Below are positions 50,775 to 59,019 of a stretch of 64,000 nucleotides of DNA, piece after piece. The notes below the pieces were generated by a model, which worked only from the letters and a program-made list of their open reading frames with translations, was not told the origin of the DNA and did no database searches. The position numbers and the translations under genes are program-made. Source of the stretch: Zygnema circumcarinatum SAG 698-1b (Eukaryota; Plantae; Zygnematophyceae). Location: positions 3,484,829 through 3,548,828 of the forward strand of contig CM074807.1 in the NCBI GenBank assembly GCA_037447605.1, in the 5' to 3' direction. Positions within the stretch are counted from its first letter, which is position 1. Each line of letters opens with the position of its first letter.

Positions 50775-53700
50775 ATGTTTGCCAGCAGGTCGAGCAGGGC
50801 GGAGGAGGTGGTGCGGTGCGTCGGCGTGAACCTCTCTGAAGGTCCCCCTCCCGCCTCCATGCGTGCCCGTTCAGCTGCCTCCATGGACCGATCCAAGCCC
50901 CCCATGGCCGCGGCTGAGCGAGCTCCGGCCATGGCGGCGCTTGGCGCCCTGCTGCAGAGCCTCCTTCCGTACAAATCCGTAGCAGAAGCTTCCGCGCAGC
51001 TTCCGTCTGCAGCGACGTACTTGACGGCTCTGGTTAGTAGCAGGGGATGCGGAGGACGAGGTTCCATGGAGGGGGGGTACCAGGGACTCAGTTTCAGTTT
51101 CAGTTTCAGTTTGCCAGTTTGCAGCGTGCATGCAACGGGGATGGAGTGCAGGAGAGGATGAGCTCCTTTGTAAGGAGACTTTTGAGTGTGCTGGGGAATA
51201 TTGGACAGTGTGTGTTTGTGTGTGTGTGTGAGAGAGAGAGAGAGAGAGTGAGAGAGAGAGGAAGGGGAAGGGGGAGAGAGAGAGAGGGGGAGGGGGAGAC
51301 GGATGCCTTAGGAAATAAGCAAAGCTGCTTTCACACACTCTGCACTTCTCTTATCGAGGGCACAAGGCATCTCTCTCTCTCTCTCTCCCTCTCTCTCCTT
51401 CCCTCCCCCTTTCTCGCTTGCTCTCACGCTTTTTCTACCTCGTTCTTCTCCACCACAGGCTTCTTTATGATTATACATATGTTCTGACTTCAAAATTGCA
51501 ATTGAAGGTCAATCTAGTAATCTTTATCAATTCTGCAGAAATCTATAATATACTTTTTAGCCCGCTGTTCGTGTCGGCTGCTGAAATGTCAGCTGTGCTC
51601 CATGTTAGGGTTTTCAATCGGTGTTTTAGGCAGAACGAGGGGGGGTTAGAGAGAGAGCGAGAGAGAGAGAGAGAGAGAGAGAGAGAGAGAGAGAGAGAGA
51701 GAGAGAGAGAGAGAGAGAGAGAGAGAGAGAGAGAGAGAGAGAGAGAGAGAGAGAGAGAGAGAGAGAGAGAGAGAGAGAGAGAGAGAGAGAGAGAGAGAGA
51801 GAGAGAGAGAGAGAGAGAGAGAGAGAGAGAGAGAGAGAGAGAGAGAGAGAGAGAGAGAGAGAGAGAGAGAGAGAGAGAGAGAGAGAGAGAGAGAGAGAGA
51901 GAGAGAGAGAGAGAGAGAGAGAGAGAGAGAGAGAGAGAGAGAGAGAGAGAGAGAGAGAGAGAGAGAGAGAGAGAGAGAGAGAGAGAGAGAGAGAGAGAGA
52001 GAGAGAGAGAGAGAGAGAGAGAGAGAGAGAGAGAGAGAGAGAGAGAGAGAGAGAGAGAGAGAGAGAGAGAGAGAGAGAGAGAGAGAGAGAGAGAGAGGAG
52101 AGAGAGAGAGAGAGAGAGAGAGAGAGAGAGAGAGAGAGAGAGAGAGAGAGAGAGAGAGAGAGAGAGAGAGAGAGAGAGAGAGAGTAGAGAGAGAGAGAGA
52201 GAGAGAGAGAGAGAGAGAGAGAGAGAGAGAGAGAGAGAGAGAGAGAGAGAGAGAGAGAGAGAGAGAGAGAGAGAGAGAGAGAGAGAGAGAGAGAGAGAGA
52301 GAGAGAGAGAGAGAGAGAGAGAGAGAGAGAGAGAGAGAGAGAGAGAGAGAGAGAGAGAGAGAGAGAGAGAGAGAGAGAGAGAGAGAGAGAGTTAGAGGTA
52401 TGGATATTAATAGATAGAGGACAGGGCATAAATACAGCAATCTAAAGGAACTGAGAGCAGATCAGATTTGCAGTCAGAGGCAGCGCATGTCTGCATTGTT
52501 ATCAGGTTAGCTCATTGAATTGCTTCGAATTTCTCTGCTTTTGCAGCTTATTGGAGCGAGTATATGGCCTGGAATAGCCATTGGAGACACTCCCTGTAAT
52601 CAGAAGCAACCCTTGTCCGGGCAACGGAAAGTTTTTGAACAAATTGAATTCTTTTGGCAAGCAGCGCTCATTTTTGCAGCTGCACTTTCGGCAAAAATTG
52701 CTCAAGTTGCTGCGGGAACTGCCCCTCTTAAATATTTCTCAAAGCGACAACTGGAAGCAGGGGAAGACTCCCTGGAAGGAGTCAAAAATTTCTCCTCTCT
52801 AACGTTAGTTTTGGGAGGAGTGGCTGTCACTGGAAATGGATTCATGGCATTCGCAAGTTGGTTGTCCGGAGCAGCAACATGGAGGAATTCTCTAAGGTGT
52901 GAAAAAACAGCGATTAGACTCAATTTCTGTGATGTGATTATGGACCAAAACCACTCCAGTACTCTTGCAAATTTAGGGTTTTAAGGGAGTTTTCCGCTTG
53001 CAACTGAAGCGGAGATTCGTACTCTCTTTTGCATATGATTATGGACCAAAACCATTCCAGTACTCTTGCAAATTTCCCCTATAGAACGGAGTTTTCTGCT
53101 TGCAACTGAAGCGGAGATTCGTGGTCTCTTTTGCAGTGTATGGATGGAAGCTACTTTGGGAGATGTTATGGGAGTCTTTGCAGTATTGCCACTCCTCGTG
53201 CAGTTCACACATAGAGACCCTTCTTTGGGGGTATTCAGCATGCCTCTAAAGAAGCTTCTAGAGTTTCTTGCCATGCTGGCATGCCACCTGGCACTCTCTG
53301 GACCAATCATGGCCCTCGTAACAGCCTATGCTGACCTCAGCATGCTCCTTCCTTACTGCGTAGCTCCAACTCTCATCTGGGCAGCATTTCGTTTCAACGA
53401 AAGGTAAACCCTTTTTTGCTGCTCTTTTTAGGGTTTTGGTGTTCGAATCTTACCTTTTGGCTACCAGATGTTCCCTCCCTTCCCTTTGTTCTCAACCCTA
53501 CTGTATGCTTTTAGGGTTTGGTGCTGAATTCGAAGTAAGTTGGCTCCTTCCTCCCTTGTCTTGGCCACCTATCAATCAATCTACTGCTTTCTCTGATTAC
53601 CTTTTCCATGATGAAAAAAGTAATTTTGGGATGGGATGGGAGAGCAGAGGGCTCCCCTCCCTCCTCCTCCTCACTGTCTTGCAGGTCTCCTTCTTTGGCC

Positions 53701-56700: not shown

Positions 56701-59019
56701 GGAGCTGCAGGTAGAGACAACCGACGAAGTCATAATGCCGGATAGTCCTCATGGAACAAATTTTAGAACTAATTTCTTTCGAAATGTTGGGGAAGCCGAA
56801 CCTGCAAAAAGATTTTCTACGGAGCCTTTCAATAGAGCTCCTGCAAAGTTCAGAAGTGCAGAATTTCTTCTCGCAAATGGGAATAAAGGAAAGGGGAAAA
56901 GACGCTCTGCGGAGGAGTTGGCATCTCTTTGGAGTTCATTCACTCCGGGGGGGGGAGGGAAGGGAGGGAAAAGAGTGGGAGTGAGAGTTGGAGTGGGAGG
57001 GGGAGGAGGAGGAGGGGAGACTCTGAAGGAGGGAAAGTTGGCGGATTTGGAGGAGGAGCAGCAAATGGGAGAGGGAGAAGATATATGGCTTCTGCTTACT
57101 GTTCAGGACACAGGAATTGGAATCAAGAAGGAGCTCATTAAGGAGGTTTTTAAAAACTTCGTGCAGGCAGATACGAGCACCACACGCCTGTATGGCGGCA
57201 CAGGTAAGAAAAAGCCCTGTCAGTGGTGTAAATCTGAATTGCTTCCTCTCCTCCTACAGCTCTTCCTTCTCCATTTCCGTCTTCTAAAAATCGTAAAATC
57301 CCTACAAACCCATCTACCTTGTTTGTGCCTTTGTTGTTTCTTCTGTTTCCTTCTCCCTCGTTGTATCCTTCTTGTTTCCTTTCATCACTTCCTAATTCAC
57401 CTTCATCGCCTTTTTCTGCTCCTCCTCTCCCTCACTAACCCCCTCCTCTTCTTGCATCTTCTTTCCTTTTCTCACCAGGACTTGGCCTCAGCATCGTTCA
57501 AAGGTGAGAAAAGCAACCAACGAACACTAAAAATCCTCAAAACGGCAAACCCTAATCTTCCTGAAAGCACCCAACTTATTTTTTACATAATATAAGTACT
57601 ATAAATTCCTTGTGTTGGAAAGAAACTTACTCTTCAGATTCGTGCTCTAGTAAGTCGGTCGGTCGGTTGGTCGTTGATCGTTGGTCGGTTTGTTTGTTCT
57701 TTAGTTTCATTCCTTAACCCTAAAAAACCCTCCAAACTGCAGATTGGTGGCTATGATGGAAGGTCGCATATGGGTGGAGAGCAAGTTAGGACAGGGGTCC
57801 ACCTTCTCTTTCATAGCAAGATTCAAGAAAGCAAATCTTCCCGAAAGACCGGAATCTCCCTCTCCTATGAAATCTTCACCAAAGTTACTCCCTTCAAAAA
57901 CCGCTGTCAGTAGAAAGCTGCCTGTGGAGCAGCCCATTAGAGTAGAAACCACTAGTAGTGTCTCTTCTCCGAAATCTGTCTCCTTCAGCCTTCCTCCTAC
58001 TGCTCCCCTCTCCCGACCACCTCTCTTGCAGCTTTCCGGAGCATTCCGTAATCCGACCGATCCTTTGCGACAACCCACTTCTTCTTCTTCTTCTTCTTCT
58101 TCTCTTACTCTCCCAAAATCACGTCTTGGAGTTTCCTCTACTGCCAAAGAGGGAGTTGGAGAAGAAAGGACCCCTTTTTCTCATACTGTCGACCCATCTG
58201 AAACATTCCGGAAGCTTCCTTCCTTACATAGAATGGATACTTGTCCAGATTTGGCAGCCATGGCCAGACAGGGATTGTTGCAGCACTTGCGTGAAGTGCA
58301 AGAGCAGGCGGAGGAGAAGGAGAAGGAGAAGGAGAAGGAGGGGATGGAGGTAGCAACATGCGGGAGTGGGAGTGAGAGTGTGATTGATAGTGAGAGTGAG
58401 AGGAGGGAGGGTTCAGGGCCAGTCGCAGTGAGCCTCTCAGGGCTTAAGATTCTCCTCGCAGAGGACAATATGGTGAATCAAAAGGTGGCCTGCCACCTTC
58501 TCACAAAGCAGGGAGTGGAGGTAGATGTGGTGGGAGATGGACAGTTGGCAGTCGATATGATGTCAGCTCGGGCTAAGGAGTATGACTGTATCCTCATGGA
58601 CATTCAGGCAAGCAGCAAAAACCCTTCCTTCCTTCCTTTCTTTCTTTCTTTCATTCTCTCTTTCTCTCTTTCTTTCGTTCATCTACATGCTTTCTTATTC
58701 ATTCTACTTGTGTAATAGAATTCACCTTGTTGATTCTTCGTTTTCATTCTTTGGGTGGTTCTTTGATTGGTTTCATTCCTCTCCTGTGTTTCAGATGCCT
58801 GTGATGGATGGCTTGGAAGCCACTCGGTTGATCCGAGCCATGGAGAGTGAGAGAGGGAGGAAGTACACTCCCATCATCGGGTTAACGGCACACGCCATTC
58901 AGGGCTACAAAGACCAGTGTCTGTTGGCCGGCATGGACGGCTACGCGTGCAAACCCTTCCGCATAGACGATCTCACGGAGGTTATTCTCACATCGATGGC
59001 GCAGTGCGGGAAGGCATGA
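50775..59019 (+). CDS. Hybrid sensor histidine kinase: MASE1-like membrane sensor + HisKA + HATPase_c + receiver
   Basis: Exons ~50775-51032 (start uncertain), 52547-52896 (IWPGIAIG), 53137-53403 ([15 protein letters not shown]), probable ~53467-53534, 53685-53879, 54134-54216 + 54434-54707 ([27 protein letters not shown]), 54888-54996, 55926-57203 (GNAIKFT ... [20 protein letters not shown]), 57479-57503 (GLGLSIVQ), 57743-58607 ([16 protein letters not shown]), 58795-59019 ([21 protein letters not shown]). Confidence 0.95.
51648..52391. repeat. (AG)n microsatellite, ~740 bp, in first intron of the histidine kinase
   Basis: Nearly pure ag run. Confidence 0.99.
55040..55640. repeat. Purine-rich minisatellite (~45-50 nt unit gagagagaagtgggagagagagggagggaatggacggaaggggga), roughly a dozen copies, in kinase intron
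   Basis: Recurring tggacggaagggg core every ~45-50 nt. Confidence 0.9.

Follow-up and report, generated by a model that had tools for sequence, protein, structure and literature searches.

What kind of receptor is encoded at positions 50775-59019 of the window, and to which group of signaling proteins does it belong? The window is the whole stretch of DNA that was analyzed, 64,000 nucleotides (nt) of contig CM074807.1 of the alga Zygnema circumcarinatum SAG 698-1b. An earlier reading of these letters, made without database searches (the sequence-only reading), had proposed that the locus encodes a membrane sensor of the MASE1 type fused to a complete hybrid histidine kinase (HK), and that this sensor is an uncharacterized input into two-component signaling that was lost in seed plants. 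Plant two-component receptors with known signals, those for cytokinin, ethylene and osmotic stress, are central to development and to stress responses. The MASE1 class is, to our knowledge, the sole class of plant HKs for which there is no known signal, mutant or partner. The locus is very probably an expressed nuclear gene for a MASE1-domain hybrid HK, the algal counterpart of a group of bryophytes, lycophytes and ferns that is found in gymnosperms too.

Gene structure and expression

The + strand between 50.7 and 59.0 kb contains a series of open frames that are spaced by GA-rich, repeat-filled stretches. Together these frames form an 11-exon gene (Table 1) with a product of 1321 amino acids (aa; 3966 nt, 1321 codons), which ends at a TGA stop codon at 59017-59019. 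All the peptides quoted in the sequence-only reading lie in the frames and in the order that it gave. The start codon is uncertain. Five in-frame ATGs are present from 50775 to 50931, and the first ATG after the in-frame stop at 50649-50651 was used; the choice affects no domain.

Transcript contigs of four public runs, each from a different study, were aligned to 52420-55025, a stretch picked to avoid the (AG)372 array and the minisatellite of the neighboring introns. In all four runs there are contigs that skip five segments with GT..AG ends, and these contigs are therefore spliced transcripts. Before 52546 the loose end of the contigs matches 51003-51031, where exon 1 ends; beyond 54996 it matches the letters from 55926 on, where exon 8 starts. 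A single 2716-nt contig connects exon 1 through exon 8. Since every junction from exon 1/2 to exon 7/8 is found in spliced contigs, splicing joins the exons of the membrane part to those of the kinase, as the fusion proposed in the sequence-only reading implies. That reading would have been refuted by N-terminal exons that do not join the kinase, and the contigs show that they do join it. The gene is transcribed.

The last three junctions were placed from splice signals and frame, and they include a 25-nt micro-exon and a GC-AG intron (58608-58794). Without the micro-exon the G2 box is lost and the frame is broken. The joins at the micro-exon and at the GC-AG intron are residue-identical in P0164, an mRNA-derived algal homologue that is an intronless open reading frame (ORF) of 1279 aa on a 5216-nt contig of another run.

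A few contigs deviate from this structure. A minor contig of run X2 (depth 4) has a junction of 54301 with 54430 in place of 54216 with 54434, and one contig of run X3 enters position 53660 from unrelated upstream letters. These contigs may be chimeric, or may stem from alternative splicing or from another first exon. Introns 2 and 3 are covered by low-depth contigs, which suggests unspliced RNA or DNA carry-over.

The introns are rich in repeats. The microsatellite of intron 1 is near-perfect (744 bp, 51648-52391, 99% matches), and further long AG arrays are present at about 45.5-46.4 kb of the window. The 3' end of intron 2, up to the acceptor of exon 3, is taken up by a 102-bp tandem duplication (52935-53135) whose two copies are 88% identical; the AG of the acceptor is absent from the first copy. 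Within intron 7, positions 55026-55630 hold a GA-rich minisatellite with a 53-bp unit, about 10 copies and higher-order periods of 106-241 bp.

Identity of the membrane domain

The membrane domain is a MASE1 domain, as the sequence-only reading had held, and four kinds of evidence agree on this: the Pfam match of exon 3, a profile of bacterial MASE1 domains, the homologue P0164, and the fold of the P0164 model. Exon 3 alone matches Pfam MASE1 (PF05231) with an expect value (E) of 6.7e-6 and 25.9 bits, short of the curated 29.8, over positions 142-238 of the 299 in the profile. A separate profile was built from 10 bacterial MASE1 domains, four of them from Escherichia coli (UhpB, DgcE, PdeA and PdeF, checked with Pfam) and six from metagenomic kinases. 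It scores 48.2 bits on the spliced protein over residues 75-328. On the isolated domain the score is 55.3 bits; 300 shuffles reach at most 5.7, and the reversed domain scores -5.4.

P0164 and the gene model are 49.5% identical over 1302 columns, and their MASE1 regions are 44% identical (E=3e-67). Identity rises from 31% in exon 2 to 55% in exon 3 and 61% in exon 4. P0164 itself matches Pfam MASE1 with 77 bits (cut-off 29.8) over profile positions 8-297. An AlphaFold 2 (AF2) model of the P0164 MASE1 domain has a predicted local distance difference test (pLDDT) value of 77, a predicted template modeling (pTM) score of 0.70, and 10-11 helical segments. The nearest ESM-Atlas shapes to this model, which is that of the homologue and not of the window protein, are bacterial MASE1 proteins in 10 of 10 cases, with template modeling (TM) scores of 0.52-0.59.

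The MASE1 family is described as N-terminal, about 300 aa long and membrane-embedded, with 8-10 helices and short loops (PMC6510439). The eight hydrophobic segments of the window protein, which bear out the multi-membrane-spanning N-terminus first noticed, and their loops of at most 26 aa fit this description. A polytopic domain of another family was considered and rejected, given the bacterial profile score, the Pfam match of P0164 and the fold neighbors of its model.

Two further searches returned nothing. An exhaustive search of representative sequences with exon 3 (88 aa) gave no match at E<=0.001, though P0164 is 55% identical there, so that this result is not evidence of absence; a bias filter on membrane sequence or a gap in the library may be the cause. 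A word search with the whole 595-aa frame of exon 8 gave no match and was probably swamped by low-complexity words.

Domain layout and catalytic motifs

The predicted protein consists of the polytopic domain (about 265 aa), a helical linker, HisKA, HATPase_c split by an insert of about 360 aa, a second linker and a receiver. Pfam searches with the separate exon ORFs of the gene return only MASE1, HisKA, HATPase_c and Response_reg, in that order, and in these searches CHASE, GAF, PAS and ethylene-binding domains have no match, in agreement with the sequence-only reading. The HATPase_c match lies in the frame of exon 8, which is open over 595 codons. All the residues that define HisKA, HATPase_c and receiver domains are intact: the H, N, G1, F and G2 boxes, the acidic pair, the phospho-accepting aspartate, the threonine and the lysine. 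Each of those named in the sequence-only reading could be located in the gene model. On these motifs the protein is predicted to be a hybrid kinase competent for phosphorelay.

Family membership and phylogeny

A word search with the 43-aa stretch from the G1 to the G2 box matched a 1000-aa protein of Selaginella with MASE1, HisKA, HATPase_c and receiver domains. The region of this protein from MASE1 to the N box was then the query of a family search, which returned a compact family. Every member has the same four domains by Pfam. The family includes lycophytes (Selaginella, Diphasiastrum), liverworts (Calypogeia, Riccia and Marchantia, whose protein is named MpMASE1 in NCBI), mosses (Ceratodon, Physcomitrium), ferns (Adiantum, Ceratopteris, Psilotum, Pteridium) and gymnosperms. 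The gymnosperm members, from Ginkgo biloba (P0122) and Cryptomeria japonica (P0132/P0239/P0240), are full-length. The claim that the pathway was lost in seed plants is wrong, because gymnosperm orthologues exist. No named angiosperm protein is among the family-level matches, although angiosperm proteomes dominate the named sources, and the matches are consistent with an absence of the family from angiosperms only.

From the last MASE1 helices up to and including the N box, the identity of the window protein to the land-plant family is about 50-57%; in the receiver it is 57-64%. In all members one BLAST alignment spans MASE1 helix 5 or 6, the linker, HisKA and the N box (query residues 240 or 274 to 544). 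To judge from these alignments, the point at which MASE1 and kinase are fused is the same across the family.

A careful maximum-likelihood tree was built from the kinase core and receiver (32 rows, 499 columns). In it the window protein and P0164 form an algal pair with support of 100/100, which lies outside an embryophyte clade supported at 93/95. Algae and embryophytes together are split from the bacterial kinases at 100/100, and a larger, quick tree agrees. The tree thus places the algal gene as sister to the land-plant clade of MASE1 HKs.

The regions of the two algal proteins have diverged to different degrees. The catalytic segments are 76-96% identical, the receiver 88% and the linker helix 84%. 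For MASE1 the figure is 44%. It falls to about 35% in the two stretches of low complexity, with 36% for the insert of the catalytic domain.

Observations that weigh against this assignment concern the domain, the gene model, the catalysis and the trees. The 25.9 bits of exon 3 fall below the curated MASE1 cut-off of 29.8 bits, a score for a single exon and not for the spliced domain, and exons 2 and 4, scored singly, have no Pfam match at E<=1. Exons 9-11 were placed from splice signals, frame and the homologue, and the alignment to 52420-55025 provides no direct reads for them; its support for exons 1 and 8 is indirect, by way of the loose ends. The insert of about 360 aa within the ATP-binding domain could impair catalysis. 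The family tree includes no other classes of plant kinases (AHK1, CKI1, CHK, ETR). In a tree of MASE1 alone the two algal proteins stand apart from the embryophytes. Forcing both into one clade costs only 1.0 log-likelihood units, and the approximately unbiased (AU) test does not reject such a clade (p-AU 0.455); the MASE1 domain by itself is too divergent to settle the placement of the algae.

Proposed mechanism and alternative explanations

The protein would sit in the membrane as a dimer. Since no loop between the eight hydrophobic segments is longer than 26 residues, an extramembrane ligand-binding domain is not present, and for this reason the cue probably acts within the membrane or reaches the kinase by way of a partner membrane protein. 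The last membrane helix would run without a break into the DHp domain, so that a movement of this helix may set the autophosphorylation of H394; in the AF2 model of P0164 a long terminal helix spans residues 278-325. The catalytic domain would phosphorylate H394. D1245, in the receiver of the same protein, would take over the phosphate, which a separate HPt protein would then relay to response regulators, the route that the sequence-only reading had also proposed.

Two explanations of the input are about equally tentative. In the first, MASE1 senses nothing itself and only receives the state of a membrane partner, transporter-like or GTPase-linked, as in the pairs UhpB-UhpC and DgcE-RdcA/RdcB; E. 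coli UhpB receives its input through its partner UhpC. The uniformly short extramembrane loops (<=26 aa) favor this possibility, as does the faster evolution of MASE1 (44% identity) than of the kinase (76-96%) between the algal proteins, as would be expected of a co-evolving interface. No candidate partner gene adjoins the gene in the window, but this says little because genes of eukaryotes seldom form clusters. Partner input is known for the best-studied MASE1 proteins of bacteria (PMC6510439). In the second explanation, which we hold possible with the same reserve and which is that of the sequence-only reading, MASE1 is itself the sensor. Its helices would respond to a property of the membrane (tension, lipid composition or potential) or to a small ligand, hydrophobic or ionic. 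Nearly all of the domain is embedded in the membrane, and a single continuous helix, with no PAS, HAMP or GAF domain in between, is modeled to lead from it to the DHp domain. On the other hand, the literature found shows no MASE1 domain that binds a ligand directly, and the PDB, searched by sequence and by fold, contains no MASE1 structure that could reveal a pocket. The direct and the partner-coupled input are not separable on this evidence.

It is unlikely that the protein is a receptor with weakened catalysis whose main role is that of a phosphatase, scaffold or decoy. Such a role could follow from the large insert (about 360 aa) that separates the N box from the G1 box. However, the five boxes of the kinase (H, N, G1, F, G2) and the phospho-accepting aspartate of the receiver are intact, inserts at the same site are a trait of the family (with about 60 aa in Selaginella and about 300 aa in P0164), and the catalytic segments that flank the insert are 81-96% conserved between the two algae.

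That the gene is a bacterial contaminant or a very recent horizontal transfer, and not an inherited streptophyte gene, is extremely improbable: MASE1 is overwhelmingly bacterial and the next-best matches beyond the plant family are bacterial hybrid kinases, but ten spliceosomal introns rule out bacterial contamination, transcripts are spliced at these introns, and a second algal homologue forms with the gene a pair sister to the land-plant clade (100/100). An ancient transfer into the streptophyte stem is possible.

Comparison with known systems

The architecture is not new as a receptor type; it is that of a known, uncharacterized class of plant kinases. HKs with a MASE1 domain have been on record from non-seed plants since 2010 (Ishida et al., cited by Kabbara et al. 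2018, PMC6324907). Kabbara et al. report the group only from early-diverging land plants, with Pinus taeda among the species surveyed, and not from Klebsormidium; no ligand of plant MASE1 kinases is known according to the same paper (PMC6324907). PF05231 is one of the domains listed for the histidine-kinase tree of a 2026 paper on Zygnematophyceae, which does not discuss it. The literature searches turned up nothing on MpMASE1 and no study of what any plant MASE1 kinase does. The claim of an uncharacterized input thus stands as far as the ligand is concerned; it does not stand as a first sighting, since such kinases were described in 2010 and one has been named.

The embryophyte MASE1 HKs of Physcomitrium patens, Marchantia (MpMASE1) and Selaginella moellendorffii have the same order of domains as the window protein and likewise an insert between the N and G1 boxes. 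This insert is only about 60 aa long in Selaginella, compared with about 300 aa in P0164 and about 360 aa in the window protein. The MASE1 domain differs too. In the algae it is in one piece, as in bacteria, whereas the embryophyte domains (P0009, P0122, P0129, P0150) have an extra 135-200 aa in mid-domain and are matched in two pieces by both Pfam and the bacterial profile. For the N-terminal half of MASE1 the identity to Selaginella is only about 21%.

Bacterial MASE1 hybrid kinases (the metagenomic P0215, P0220 and P0166 and their relatives) share the order MASE1, HisKA, HATPase_c, receiver, and the fold of the P0164 model agrees with theirs. P0215 and P0220, like the algal protein, have no PAS or GAF domain between MASE1 and kinase. 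Most bacterial MASE1 hybrid kinases differ in having a fused HPt domain, and many have PAS or GAF domains. They have neither introns nor the large catalytic insert, and they are separated from the plant family by the branch supported at 100/100.

UhpB, DgcE, PdeA and PdeF of E. coli belong to the same family of membrane domains (60-240 bits with Pfam). Their output parts are different: UhpB has a HisKA_3-type kinase and no receiver, and DgcE, PdeA and PdeF are enzymes of cyclic di-GMP. The MASE1 domain of DgcE receives its input from the RdcA/RdcB GTPase system, and that of PdeF modulates an aspartate-related response (PMC6510439, PMC3718329).

MASE1 kinases have also been reported from brown algae and their viruses (PMC6324907; bioRxiv 10.1101/2024.02.19.579948). 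These are likewise encoded in eukaryotes, a likeness taken from the published description and not from the sequences. They are reportedly often single-exon and virus-derived (bioRxiv 10.1101/2024.02.19.579948), in contrast to the ten introns of the gene in the window.

Coordinates and other features of the window

Table 1. Parts of the MASE1 hybrid HK gene and of its predicted product. Exon and intron positions are those of the window; residues are those of the 1321-aa product.
Feature	Position	Strand	Content and support
Exon 1 (coding part)	50775..51032	+	N-terminal tail and beginning of first MASE1 helix; loose end of contigs
Intron 1	51033..52546	+	GT..AG; contains (AG)372 microsatellite
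Exon 2	52547..52896	+	MASE1 helices 1-3; IWPG motif at 52559-52573; spliced contigs of 4 runs
Exon 3	53137..53403	+	MASE1 core, helices 4-6; conserved IWAAFRFN motif at 53372-53398; Pfam, spliced contigs
Exon 4	53648..53879	+	Final two MASE1 helices, into helical linker leading to kinase; spliced contigs
Exon 5	54134..54216	+	End of linker and H box (54203-54440, across intron 5); spliced contigs
Exon 6	54434..54707	+	HisKA / DHp; Pfam HisKA E=8.6e-9; spliced contigs
Exon 7	54888..54996	+	Beginning of HATPase_c, to first residues of N box; spliced contigs
Exon 8	55926..57203	+	N box, insert of about 360 aa, G1 and F boxes; start from loose end of contig after 54996
Exon 9	57479..57503	+	25-nt micro-exon completing G2 box (GLGLSIVQ); predicted from AG/GT signals, frame and P0164
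Exon 10	57743..58607	+	End of HATPase_c, S/P-rich linker, receiver to D1245; GC donor; predicted
Exon 11	58795..59019	+	Second half of receiver (T1278, K1300) and stop TGA; Pfam Response_reg E=9.7e-10
Eight hydrophobic segments	residues 79-337		Loops <=26 aa
Helical linker	residues 341-385		
H box	H394		Phospho-accepting histidine, in SHEIRTP
N box	residues 524-532		
E/G/S-rich insert	residues 546-905; 55988-57067		About 360 aa, disordered
G1 box	residues 917-924		
F box	residues 933-940		
G2 box	residues 948-956		
S/P-rich linker	residues about 991-1192		About 200 aa
Receiver	residues 1193-1321		E1199-D1200, D1245, T1278, K1300

Two other loci of the window were seen in passing. Open frames at 35414-37124 (+) resemble, by eye, an intron-split soluble acyl-ACP (stearoyl-ACP) desaturase of the plant type. 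Short runs of N, which are assembly gaps, occur at about 46.7, 47.8 and 48.4 kb in or beside an intron-bearing Zn-dehydrogenase gene (43276-48579).

Significance

An intact and expressed algal orthologue moves the origin of the MASE1 class back beyond the land plants, and the loss of the class is corrected to angiosperms rather than seed plants. These results are useful for evolutionary surveys and for the choice of a knockout system; they reveal neither a new mechanism nor the signal that is sensed. With some reserve, we favor a history in which the MASE1 hybrid kinase arose before the land plants, streptophyte algae keep an ancestral MASE1 domain that is uninterrupted like the bacterial one, the embryophytes gained the insertion of 135-200 aa, and only the angiosperms lost the gene. 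If an origin before the land plants is correct, the MASE1 HK would be an ancient streptophyte receptor that was kept in most of the major land-plant lineages sampled, and it would be approachable in single-copy systems such as MpMASE1 or this alga.

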